From Saccostrea cucullata (Eukaryota): 64,000 bases of DNA. Made by a program: the position numbers and the translations under genes. The notes beneath the pieces are model-generated. The model worked only from the letters and a program-made list of their open reading frames with translations, did no database searches and was not told the DNA's origin. Shown one piece after another: positions 37,455-46,730 of this stretch (the first letter of the stretch is position 1; each line of letters opens with the position of its first letter). The stretch spans positions 248,001 through 312,000 of the forward strand of contig NW_026932716.1 of the NCBI RefSeq assembly GCF_032062105.1. The letters are read 5' to 3'.

Positions 37455-40400
37455 ATGAAGGGTTTTAAGTGTGGTTCGTCTTTTATTATTGCGCTGACCT
37501 TATTTCACGTGATAGGTAAGTATTTGTTATTCTCAAGTAGAAACTTTTAAATTATACTGTAACAAGAAAAATGCGTTCATACTCTAGTATCACTTGATTC
37601 GTTATTGATTTTGTCTGTTTGTAAAAGGTCGAGATCGATATAGGAAAATTTGTTTCATTACAAAATATGTTGAAAGGGATCAAAACACGGATCCCTGGTA
37701 CATGTAGTTCGAGAGATGGGGCTAGGTACATAGGAGGAACAAGCATCCACTGTTGTCCTGTCACATCCGCCATGATCCCTGTGTATCATCATTCCATAAC
37801 AATGACATCACCTTTAGTATGAGACAAGTCAGCCAAAATAAGACAAGATGGTAGATTAAATGTGCAAACGAATTCGTAAGGTCGTTAAAATGATAATTAG
37901 GGCATTGAGTTGACCATAAAAGTTGTAAACCCTGGGCTCTAAACGAGATTCCTGGAATCCCTGTTACATCAATTTATCAATGAGTTGTATAGAATACAAT
38001 ATATTAAATATAAAATATAGAAATAATATTCTGTACAAAATGTTAAATACCAATTTACTCTCATTCTGTATTAATACTATTGTTTATCAGGGATTTTAAT
38101 TGATATTTACAGGCGTGGAAAAACAGCTGGACACCTACATGTACTACATAACAACATAAATCTACATATTTTGATAACTAAGAAAGTTTTTTTTTTTTTT
38201 TAAATAATCGAAGGTTTTAGTTGAGATTTGAATTCATCTCTCGACTGCAACATTTTTTTTTTCACTCAAAATATGAAAATTTTTCCAACTCAAAAATTAA
38301 CATTAGTATTCAGCTATTAGATATTAATAAATGGTCTATTGATTGTCATTTAAATCTATTCCAACAATCTATTGGATTTCCCATGGGTACCAATTGCACT
38401 CCGTTATTAGTGGACCTATTTTTGTATTTACATGAAGCAGAATTTGTGCAAAATCTTATGCATGAAAAAAAACAACAACACTTTGTTGTGGCGTTCAACT
38501 CGACATTTAGATATATCGACGATACTGTTAATTAATAATGGTAATTTCCATTTCTACGTCGATACGATATATTCTAGTGAGCTTGAGATAAAAGATACCA
38601 CAGAGTCTGACACATCTGTTTCATACTCGGATATTTAACTTGGAAAAGACGTTAATGGTAATCTAACAACCAAGCTATATGATAAACGTGATGACTTTAA
38701 CTTTTCTATCGTCAGCTTCCCTTACTTATGCAGCAATGTACCTTCATCACCTGCATACGGAGTGTATTTATCTCAGTTGCTTCGATATGCAAGGGCTTGC
38801 TCTGCGTATGAACAATTTCTAAAACGAGGTAAATTATTGACAAGCAAGTTGATGAAACAAGAATATCATCAGTCTCGTTTAAAGTCATCATTTCGTAAGT
38901 GCTATGGTCGATACAATGACCTTGTCAGCAAATACAATTTATCATTGAGCCAGATGCTGACGGACGTTTTTCATACCAAGTGTTAGTCCATTATTTATAC
39001 ATTGAATTGACGACGGATTTTTCCGTTATTTCCTTATCATGACAAGGAGCACACGGTGTGTGTGACCGGTCAGCAGGGGATGCTCACTCCTCCATGGCAC
39101 CTGATCCCACCTCTGATGTATCGGAGGTCCGCGTTTGCTCTGCTCCTGTTTTGTATTGTTTTATGAACTTCGATATTGAATACTGTTCGTTATCTCCATA
39201 TCTTTATCTAAACATATCATCTGTTGTGTAAGTTACTCTGATTTTACACAAATGTACTGTAAAATTGACAAAAAATTGGCATAAATAATTTAACTCAAAT
39301 GGATATTGGCTAATCTGAATTTTTTAAACTAAGAAGTATATAGTACGTTTCTAGCTATTGCTTGTTGGACCGTGGCCTCACTATTTACAACACATATAGG
39401 TACTTTTAATTTCAACACTGTTACAAATGTATTAACAAATTCAATTATTTCCTTTTCATGTATCGACACGATATATCCCAAATGAACTTGATATGAAAGA
39501 CACCACTCCTCCAGGCACCGATTCTACCTCTGGAATTTTTAGGGGCTGAGTTTTTATGCCCTATTCACATATCTAATTTCTTTAAATTCTAAAAAAAAAA
39601 AAAAACACACACACACACACACACGTAAACTTCTTAAAATAAAATAAAAATCGACACCTTGTCATAAGTTCTTATATCTAGCATGACAAATTAAATATAT
39701 TTCTGATGACATTTGAATGTATGTATTTATTTTAGATGCATTTCCGCCATCAAAATCACAATCCGCCAAAACATGTCCGTATAATGAAACTGAGTGGATG
39801 AAGAGATCGACAAAATTCTTTTGTCAGGGGAAGGAAGTTTATCACTGTTTTCTTGCTGAGGACGAAGTTTCCGTTAAAGAAAAATGTGTAGAAAGAACAA
39901 TGATGCTTAAAGGTACCTAATGCCAACATAAAAATCCCAGAATAAATTTTGCTTTCGCAAGACATCTGAATTTTCTTTAGGAACTTTTTAATAAAACTTT
40001 TTCATTTGTAGGTTTCTGCCCAATATTCACAGACTTAGGTTACTTACACTGGAGTCCATGCAATAGAACAGGGTGTCCCAACTCAACATACACCAGTGAT
40101 AAAGTTTACAAATTTACAAACACTAAGTAATTTAACGATGTTGTAGAAAATTAAAAGAAGTGTATACATTTTTTCGTCCCTCACATTCGTTCAAATCTAA
40201 AATATTATATTGGATTTATCTGTCCGTCCTTCTGTCAGTGATTTGTAACACGAGTTTGTATTTTTTAAAATAATTCTTAAAGCTGCTTAATCCGGCACAT
40301 ATTATCTTACACAATAAAAGTACGTCATTTCATAGAAAATATATATAAATAAATAATAAGATTGATTTAATAGTTTATTACAACAATCCTTACAAGGAAA

Positions 40401-46400: not shown

Positions 46401-46730
46401 CTGGAAGCTGAGGAGATTACACAAATGTGGACATCAAAATTCAGCGGTAATTACAAAGAAACAAACGAGATTGTTGTCTTTTGGCACACCTTTCTTTACA
46501 TTTCTGCTTTCCATGCATTTTATAGTCTGTTCCCGGAGAAGATGATGCGCTACTGCCATCTTGATGCCATACTACAACTCGTCCGACCAGAAGGCCAGAC
46601 ATCGGACTTCACCGTAGAAGCAAACAGAGAATTAATTTCAAGCTTTTATAAAGAAAGAATAGAAGGAAAGGTCTTTGAAAACCATGTAAGAGATCATCCC
46701 CTTCTTGTGTTTTTACAAACACAGTCTTAA
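37455..46730 (+). CDS. Uncharacterised type-I membrane receptor: signal peptide, Cys-rich ectodomain, TM helix and degenerate STAND (nSTAND3-like) domain (~550 aa); exon-3 donor defective
   Basis: Exons: 37455-37515 (MKGFKCGSSFIIALTLFHVI), 39736-39912 (CPYNETEW..RS..FCQGKEVYHCF...EKC), 40012-~40113 (GFCPIF...PCNRTGCPNSTYTSDKVYK), 41170-41224 (YRMCFGD), 44710-44831 (TM GLGIGIGVLVVIIVVAVIGVIVY), 45598-46730 (ORF 45591-46730). Phases match at every junction except the exon-3 donor. An assembly gap lies in the last intron. Confidence 0.75.
38355..39205 (+). mobile_element. Penelope-like RT 3' half plus terminus
   Basis: FQQSIGFPMGTNCTPLLVDLFL, FRYIDD, YLSQLLRYARACS...[35 protein letters not shown] and the terminus. 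Confidence 0.92.
41442..43790 (-). mobile_element. Longest Penelope-like (Naiad-type) copy: CxC linker plus RT, 5'-truncated and decayed
   Basis: Minus-strand translation ISYKYTSTIASKLFN...PPSCSCSSSSYNYCPAGHVITDD...LILKGPK-REP (CxC at 43367-43375), then YWISKLHKNPYK, GIPMGINCPPL, FRYIDDVLSINN and the terminus. Confidence 0.92.
44050..44645 (+). mobile_element. Internally deleted Penelope-like copy, inverted relative to 41442-43790
   Basis: Begins with the linker region (GHVIIGDVN...WA.YEKED) and jumps to the RT C-terminus and terminus at ~44352. Confidence 0.8.
45053..45188. other. Assembly gap (136 N)
   Basis: Run of N. Confidence 1.

Follow-up and report, generated by a model that had tools for sequence, protein, structure and literature searches.

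The region analysed here is a 64,000-nucleotide stretch of the genome of the oyster Saccostrea cucullata (assembly GCF_032062105.1, contig NW_026932716.1, labelled C14853, positions 248,001–312,000). It is called the window below, and positions are window coordinates unless a contig or locus label precedes them. The region of interest holds one member of an oyster gene family that has multiplied by tandem duplication. Its six exons encode the parts of a predicted surface receptor: a Cys-rich ectodomain, a single transmembrane (TM) helix and a cytoplasmic STAND module of the nSTAND3 type in which the catalytic motifs are dead. The novelty of the family lies in this combination, a conserved P-loop-dead, repeat-less branch of mollusc membrane-anchored nSTAND3 receptors. 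The exons and the features needed to read them are the following.

37455–37515, plus strand: exon 1; ATG at 37455, 20 codons and 1 base, hydrophobic signal-peptide-like N-terminus, donor GTAAGT.
39736–39912, plus strand: exon 2; first half of the 8-Cys ectodomain (ectodomain profile A5), AG acceptor and GT donor.
40012–40126, plus strand: exon 3; second part of the ectodomain with 3 Cys; alignment with the paralog exon puts the orthologous end at 40113.
40114–40115, plus strand: lost splice donor; AAAT/TTACAA in the window versus AAAT/GTAAAT in the paralog L024, TT replacing GT.
41170–41224, plus strand: exon 4; 55 nt encoding the eighth Cys (RMCFGDTD...); its frame is kept only behind the orthologous end of exon 3.
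44710–44831, plus strand: exon 5; acidic stalk, single TM helix (IGIGVLVVIIVVAVIGVIV) and basic juxtamembrane residues, comparable to the TM exons of paralogs.
45053–45188, no strand: assembly gap of 136 N within intron 5 (44832–45597), the sole run of N.
45598–46730, plus strand: exon 6; the whole cytoplasmic module of nSTAND3 type, composed of nucleotide-binding domain (NBD), helical domain 1 (HD1) and winged-helix domain (WHD), with the stop codon.

The translation of exon 1 is identical with residues 1–20 of the NCBI protein P0001, and that of exon 2, which contains four Cys and the conserved N-x-T sequon in CPYNETEW, is identical with its residues 21–80. Exons 2–4 form a Cys-rich stretch with three N-x-[ST] sequons (NET, NRT and NST). 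The TM segment of exon 5 comprises 19 residues with a mean Kyte-Doolittle hydropathy of 3.4, is preceded by acidic residues and followed by R/K. An AG acceptor stands before position 45598, and exon 6 runs through 376 uninterrupted codons to the TAA at 46728–46730. The signal-like exon 1, the Cys-rich exons, the TM exon and the intact last exon are thus all found where an earlier reading of this DNA (the original prediction) had placed them. The assembly gap begins 221 nt past the exon-5 donor and ends 409 nt ahead of the exon-6 acceptor. No coding sequence is expected in it, because the phases of exons 5 and 6 are compatible (A + CT giving Thr) and in the annotated proteins of two paralogs the TM exon runs straight into the last exon without an intervening one. 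The contiguity of exons 1–5 with exon 6 rests on the scaffold.

The exon-6 protein matches the Pfam nSTAND3 model (PF20720) over model positions 8–153 of 155 with 16.5 bits (E 0.007), which is below the gathering cut-off of 27.2 bits. Seven of eight relatives match the same model, P0017 above the cut-off with 30.9 bits and P0073 with 26.6 bits. Comparison by hhalign of 34 aligned family sequences (alignment A1) with canonical nSTAND3 genes from the same genome (A2) gives a match with a probability of 98.4% (E 6.7e-15) over 349 columns, extending from the P-loop strand to the F-x-H motif of the winged helix. AlphaFold2 supplied with A1 models the module with a predicted local distance difference test score (pLDDT) of 91.6 and a predicted TM-score (pTM) of 0.92, and searches with this model by Foldseek (E 3e-5 to 3e-4) and VIA-align put STAND proteins on top. 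The top structural match is Avs5 (Z 12.3), which is annotated as nSTAND3 (10.1101/2025.07.08.663546); Avs5, NRC2 and NLRC4 align over part or most of the model. MalT, SAMD9, NLRP9, NLRP3, NOD2 and Apaf-1 match across residues 1–376, with Z of 9.5–11.8 for MalT (11.8, 304 residues aligned), SAMD9, NLRP9, NOD2 and Apaf-1; ORC/Cdc6/AAA+ proteins match the NBD alone. Judged from profiles and model, the exon-6 product is a STAND NBD-HD1-WHD module of the nSTAND3 clade. The STAND fold, on which the original prediction of an nSTAND3-like domain depended, was recovered by the structural searches.

Domains that could accompany such a module were looked for on both sides. The exon-6 protein gave no NACHT or LRR match in Pfam at E up to 10, and one distant relative gave a weak match to NCH1 only. 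No repeat domain was matched in Pfam by the window protein or its relatives; the open reading frame (ORF) stops directly behind the WHD, at a point where every homolog ends too, which agrees with the earlier claim that a C-terminal repeat sensor is absent. Pfam found neither a death-fold domain nor TRADD-N in the window protein or its relatives. A search of NCBIfam returned noise only, and a sequence search of PDB with the family profile gave no meaningful match.

The motifs of the module are located as follows.

45657–45683, plus strand: degenerate Walker A, GKLGNSVST; versus GxxGxGK[ST]T, Gly is replaced by Ser and Lys by Val.
45789–45815, plus strand: Walker B strand, LYFIDGWFG; versus hhhhDDxFG, the second acid is replaced by Gly and the first Asp is retained.
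45909–45926, plus strand: sensor-1-like strand FVIGLR, with which the invariant Arg of canonical nSTAND3 aligns.
46068–46091, plus strand: Cx4CxC cluster (C157, C162, C164) at the NBD/HD1 border, in the loop after helix 140–156.
46131–46145, plus strand: IGGHL, a motif named in the original prediction as a degenerate GxP.
46479–46487, plus strand: FWH in the winged-helix region, aligned with F-S-H of canonical nSTAND3.

Every motif named in the original prediction is present at its place, and its description of the module as catalytically dead is supported: the Walker A Lys and the second acid of Walker B are gone. The canonical nSTAND3 genes of the same genome carry GxxGxGK[ST]T and hhhhDDxFG. 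The dead motifs are shared by nearly all of the 78 homologs surveyed, with GWxGLW invariant within the family at Walker B; an intact GxxGxGK[ST] together with ankyrin repeats occurs in other proteins with the same ectodomain. Among about 75 homologs, drawn from Saccostrea, Ostrea, Crassostrea and Magallana and from transcript assemblies, the sequence LGNSVSTVG is near-invariant. More distant members have GKLGTGVS or GKFGNSVS, and the deeper branches also have YGWFG, in which the Walker B Asp is replaced by Tyr. In a maximum-likelihood tree the dead members form one clade (support 100/99); the loss of the Walker A Lys therefore happened once and is old. This clade lies within animal nSTAND3 and adjoins, with weak support (90/75), the live (motif-intact) HEPN_DZIP3-nSTAND3 clade.

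The ratio of non-synonymous to synonymous substitution rates (dN/dS) for exon 6 is 0.24–0.25 between the window and intact paralogs and about 0.29 on the window's own branch. For ectodomain exons 2 and 3 a coarse, pairwise estimate is 0.24, and at this resolution the ectodomain gives no hint of diversifying selection. To judge from these ratios, the dead clade is under purifying selection and is not decaying. With the motifs in this state, hydrolysis of nucleoside triphosphates by the module is very unlikely, and the module probably has no nucleotide-exchange switch. K21 and K32 were considered as compensating lysines and ruled out, since both positions vary among the closest paralogs. The Cx4CxC cluster, which canonical nSTAND3 lacks, is invariant in 34 of 34 aligned sequences of the family; it is a possible metal site, for which the invariant H191, H296, C319 and H366 could give the fourth ligand. 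One annotated protein, P0071 of Saccostrea echinata (LOC133205335), joins residues 1–180 of the dead module to a C-type lectin domain (PF00059), with a Ser/Thr-rich tail besides; either the gene model is chimeric or the paralog has recombined. A literature search turned up no publication about the dead-P-loop clade, nor any that mentions the LOC identifiers of the orthologs.

The architecture is best seen in the full-length annotated relatives (549–579 residues). These begin with a signal peptide and the 8-Cys module; one TM helix and a linker of about 30 residues lead on to the dead module, after which the protein ends. In another oyster the architecture is carried by one mRNA, because a 551-residue ORF runs uninterrupted on a 2.5-kb Logan contig. 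Full-length products of the family are predicted to be type I membrane proteins of about 550 residues, with an ectodomain of N-glycosylation type. The signal peptide, the eight invariant Cys, the CP-x-N-x-[ST]-x-W motif and the TM helix are complete in paralog and ortholog proteins. Exons 1–5 of the window encode the same elements (a signal-like peptide, eight Cys, CP-x-N-x-[ST]-x-W and TM helix), and joining them all requires TT as a donor. The ectodomain module, defined by its invariant Cys and N-x-T (profile A5), is modelled by AlphaFold2 with pLDDT 90. No Pfam model corresponds to it, and no solved structural relative was found (best Foldseek E against PDB 0.5; no VIA-align Z of 2 or more). 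In ESM Atlas it matches mollusc clusters only, with TM-score 0.85–0.90, two of which carry nSTAND3 with or without ankyrin repeats.

The explanation that we favour, with a probability of roughly 55%, is that the family consists of type I receptors with a P-loop-dead nSTAND3 tail which work from the outside in, and that the copy in the window is impaired. The outside-in direction is the likeliest because purifying selection acts on the parts outside and inside the membrane alike, and because the tail lacks both sensor repeats and an effector. In such a receptor the ectodomain would bind an external ligand, and binding would cluster the receptor chains. The dead nucleotide-binding oligomerization domain (pseudo-NOD) would then serve as a nucleotide-independent assembly surface in a fixed state and recruit other proteins, most plausibly live nSTAND3 paralogs, for which the genome offers hundreds of candidate loci (675 at first look). 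This mechanism of assembly with live nSTAND3 partners, drawn by analogy, has about one chance in three. The still more specific proposal, that surface receptors whose NOD has given up nucleotide switching were retained throughout the history of Ostreidae, with binding of an external ligand as the trigger in place of ATP exchange and the pseudo-NOD as the nucleus of hetero-oligomers that include live nSTAND3 paralogs, should be regarded as unlikely.

Several points weigh against the receptor explanation. The annotated model of P0001 implies a 78-kb intron which jumps over window exons 3–6 and two more paralogs, and the last exon of the window is absent from all database proteins of 207–658 residues that were searched. 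The LGNSVSTVG loop is near-invariant, and the Walker A Ser/Thr, the Walker B Asp and the sensor-1 Arg are kept; the conserved pocket could still bind nucleotide or another ligand. Finally, the proposed recruitment parallels the sensor/helper NLR pairs of plants, and hetero-oligomerization is an analogy only.

The state of the pocket leads to a different explanation, in which the loop has been re-tooled to bind a nucleotide or a phosphorylated ligand without hydrolysis, so that the module would be locked in one state or act as a very slow switch. The almost invariant degenerate loop (about 75 sequences, four genera), the mostly kept D68 and R109 and the confidently predicted NBD fold all fit such a pocket. 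However, all members have Val in place of the Walker A Lys, with no conserved Lys to compensate for it, and the Walker B Asp has become Tyr in the deeper branches. We consider this explanation improbable.

Other alternatives to the outside-in receptor arise from the company which its ectodomain keeps. A profile search with the 8-Cys head found 553 cluster representatives, in all of which the module is N-terminal. The tails that follow head and TM helix include live nSTAND3 with ankyrin repeats, nSTAND3 alone, HEPN_DZIP3 with nSTAND3 (P0079, same genome) and ankyrin repeats only, as well as Roc-COR, ApoL, scramblase and Ig domains. Live receptors with the same head (P0079, P0191, P0192, P0230 and others) are found in the same genome and across molluscs. 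The original prediction had regarded a membrane-anchored STAND as exceptional; in many mollusc proteins the same head and TM helix are followed by live modules of the nSTAND3-ankyrin and HEPN-nSTAND3 kinds, so that predicted membrane-anchored STAND proteins are common in molluscs and it is the dead, stripped-down tail that is special here. In mollusc conflict systems the 8-Cys module seems to be a receptor head of general use.

It could be supposed that the pseudo-NOD acts as a decoy, capping or poisoning the oligomers of live TM-nSTAND3-ankyrin receptors and so damping their signalling. Live receptors with the same head and TM helix are indeed available, and the dead clade has no output domain of any kind. 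Yet its nearest live kin, HEPN-nSTAND3, is only 22–26% identical, which is far for a capping mimic, and the ectodomains diverge as much as the tails; we give little credence to this role.

Alternatively, sensing might proceed on the inner side, with the pseudo-NOD detecting a cytosolic ligand such as nucleic acid and with the ectodomain and TM helix serving only for anchoring, sorting or membrane output. For inactive STANDs of bacteria, a role in the reception of nucleic acids has been proposed (Kaur et al. 2021, PMC8195603), membrane-acting tails (ApoL and scramblase) are among those fused to this head, and two relatives of the dead module, P0073 and P0074, are soluble and have no head. An ectodomain which is constrained like the tail and keeps eight Cys and the sequon over hundreds of clusters exceeds what an anchor needs, and we consider intracellular sensing improbable.

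Several observations on the head stand by themselves. P0157, P0165, P0177, P0216 and P0233 bear, as tails, Roc-COR with UBA, scramblase, ApoL-like, Ig, and nSTAND3-ankyrin with a cyclic-nucleotide-binding domain. Two further contigs, C2481 (L026–L034, L038–L040) and C6485 (L035, L036, L041), hold at least a dozen single-exon genes for small type I membrane proteins with one or two 8-Cys modules, a TM helix and a short basic tail; a word-index search of the protein database found nothing of this ectodomain-only type. A search for a TM-STAND gene on contig C11044 matched an unrelated gene.

As for the window copy within the family of outside-in receptors, its weak point is the exon-3 donor. For the spliced window model only frame phase and stops were counted, with the database protein P0001 and its parts as a proxy for the ectodomain. 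By this counting, the six-exon frame with eight Cys is open only if TT at 40114–40115 is used as donor. The next GT lies 13 nt further on, at 40127, and joining it to exon 4 leads to a stop inside exon 4. Two other junctions are in frame, exon 3 with the 13 additional nucleotides to exon 5 and exon 2 to exon 4, and lose one or three of the eight Cys, respectively. Every other splice site of the six-exon model is canonical. The six-exon ORF needs a non-canonical splice because the exon-3 donor is TT, and the original claim that the six exons assemble cannot be kept in its simple form. The surface-receptor build proposed there is borne out by the full-length relatives and depends, in the six-exon model of the window copy, on this non-GT donor. 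A canonical six-exon mRNA from this copy is unlikely, and the copy may fail to make the full protein; either it was recently disabled or it yields a shortened ectodomain.

P0001, which is isoform X1 of LOC134235891 and maps to this contig, starts with window exons 1 and 2 (100% identical) and goes on with exons of a downstream paralog; the remainder of the protein has exact matches at C14853:366172, 366452, 368261 and 369544–370671. That paralog (gene D, L024, C14853:366172–370671) has its own intact exon 2 (L024:1960–2136), for which reason the 78-kb model is possibly chimeric. It may be a prediction chimera of tandem paralogs, or else reflect real long-range splicing.

The neighbourhood of the copy shows both duplication and decay. 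An exon-2-like ectodomain exon at 52041–52215 has Phe for the second conserved Cys and is probably degenerate, and another at 63089–63250 is intact and is probably part of the next tandem paralog. The TM exon and last exon of the next paralog lie just past the window, at C14853:320969 and 321506, and its NCBI protein, P0002, begins within the TM helix. The paralog L006 (C14853:349196–350326), a member of this array, carries five in-frame stops and is clearly a pseudogene. Contigs C2017 and C22543 hold identical-scoring copies with 72% identity and one TGA, which are probably haplotigs of another paralog. Exons 2–4 of the window copy are bracketed by an inverted repeat.

38361–39205, plus strand: repeat-element copy in intron 1, with an inverted partner at 41443–42296, minus strand, in intron 4.

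The arms are about 850 nt long and 85–96% complementary, a layout that can favour exon skipping or back-splicing. Further copies at 44338–44601 and 45351–45430 extend the presence of the element to introns 1, 4 and 5, and one repeat fragment adjoins the right edge of the assembly gap. Intronic ORFs resembling reverse transcriptase within the repeats had no Pfam match at E of 0.01 or below.

These data can also be read as showing a young pseudogene or remnant in a birth-and-death tandem array. The promoter and exons 1–2 may then persist only as an alternative 5' end of the downstream paralog, with exons 3–6 outside any productive mRNA. The change of the exon-3 donor from GT to TT, with a frame that needs TT and a next GT that brings a stop in exon 4, speaks for it, as do the composition of P0001, whose matches downstream are exact, the absence of a database protein with this last exon, the decayed five-stop copy already in the array, and the inverted repeat copies on both sides of exons 2–4. 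On the other hand, the 376-codon last exon is intact and the remaining splice sites are canonical, dN/dS on the branch of this copy (about 0.29) is near that of intact paralogs, and two in-frame splicing alternatives exist. Moreover, the lone T may be an assembly error or a polymorphism, and the 78-kb model may be a prediction chimera, gene D having its own intact exon 2. We regard a remnant as a serious possibility, somewhat short of even odds.

The family of outside-in receptors with dead tails is of broader interest. Across animals, plants and bacteria, STAND proteins and NLRs are central intracellular immune switches, and nucleotide exchange is regarded as the basis of their activation. 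A membrane family that keeps the fold without the catalytic residues, repeats or effector represents a natural experiment on a NOD without nucleotide turnover. Bivalves lack adaptive immunity, and the family shows extracellular recognition wired to NLR-type machinery. If true, assembly into hetero-oligomers would be the first sensor/helper arrangement in an animal that spans the plasma membrane, and would also give eukaryotes their first functional inactive STAND. For annotation the locus holds a plainer lesson, namely that tandem paralogs give rise to chimeric gene models.

Among known systems, the paired NLRs of plants (such as RRS1/RPS4 and RGA5/RGA4) offer the model for the proposed assembly. 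The P-loop of the sensor is dispensable or degenerate there, and the signal passes via a P-loop-competent partner. These pairs are cytosolic NB-ARC proteins with integrated decoy domains, encoded by head-to-head linked genes. In contrast to this genetic linkage, no such partner gene was identified beside the oyster locus.

The closest relatives in domain composition are the nSTAND3-ankyrin and HEPN_DZIP3-nSTAND3 receptors of molluscs, which share the 8-Cys head, the single TM helix and the NTPase clade. They keep GxxGxGK[ST] and ankyrin repeats or HEPN, whereas in the dead clade the P-loop is dead and no element other than a linker of about 30 residues accompanies the module. The wider nSTAND3 clade (PF20720), including Avs5 of the AVAST type 5 SIR2-STAND systems and the canonical expansion in the oyster, has a homologous NBD-HD1-WHD module. 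The oyster dead clade differs from it in the missing Walker A Lys and Gly and second Walker B acid, in the missing C-terminal TPR or ankyrin sensor repeats and N-terminal enzymatic effector, and in the anchoring of the module in the membrane behind an ectodomain.

Receptors of similar layout have been described before. In Crassostrea virginica an expanded family combines a Cys-rich extracellular domain, a TM segment, DED and TRADD-N with a variable region in which STAND NTPases, HEPN and ankyrins may occur, and external stimuli were suggested as the trigger of these receptor-like proteins (Kaur et al. 2021, PMC8195603). By description, the Cys-rich ectodomain with TM segment is alike, and both are lineage-specific bivalve expansions; the Crassostrea receptors carry DED and an NCOA6-type TRADD-N after the TM segment, and in the oyster dead clade only about 30 residues separate TM helix and P-loop. 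The sea cucumber AjNLRC4, with extracellular Ig, TM segment and intracellular NACHT, is reported to regulate phagocytosis of Vibrio (as cited in PMC13133943). It is likewise an invertebrate surface receptor with a cytoplasmic STAND module and differs in having NACHT instead of nSTAND3 and Ig instead of the 8-Cys ectodomain. Both reports further undercut the view of a membrane STAND as exceptional.

With respect to the loss of the catalytic motifs, the nearest parallel is bacterial. Kaur et al. 2021 (PMC8195603) describe inactive STANDs of bacteria and state that there are no functional precedents for inactive versions within those eukaryotic STAND systems that have been studied well. The bacterial iSTAND and iSTAND2 of the MoxR-vWA ternary conflict systems (Kaur et al. 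2020/2021) have eroded NTP motifs and yet are conserved, and are thought to be sensors or assembly components. The iSTAND proteins are cytosolic and belong to multi-gene systems, whereas the oyster clade is predicted to be membrane-anchored; and its origin is independent of theirs, because it nests within animal nSTAND3.

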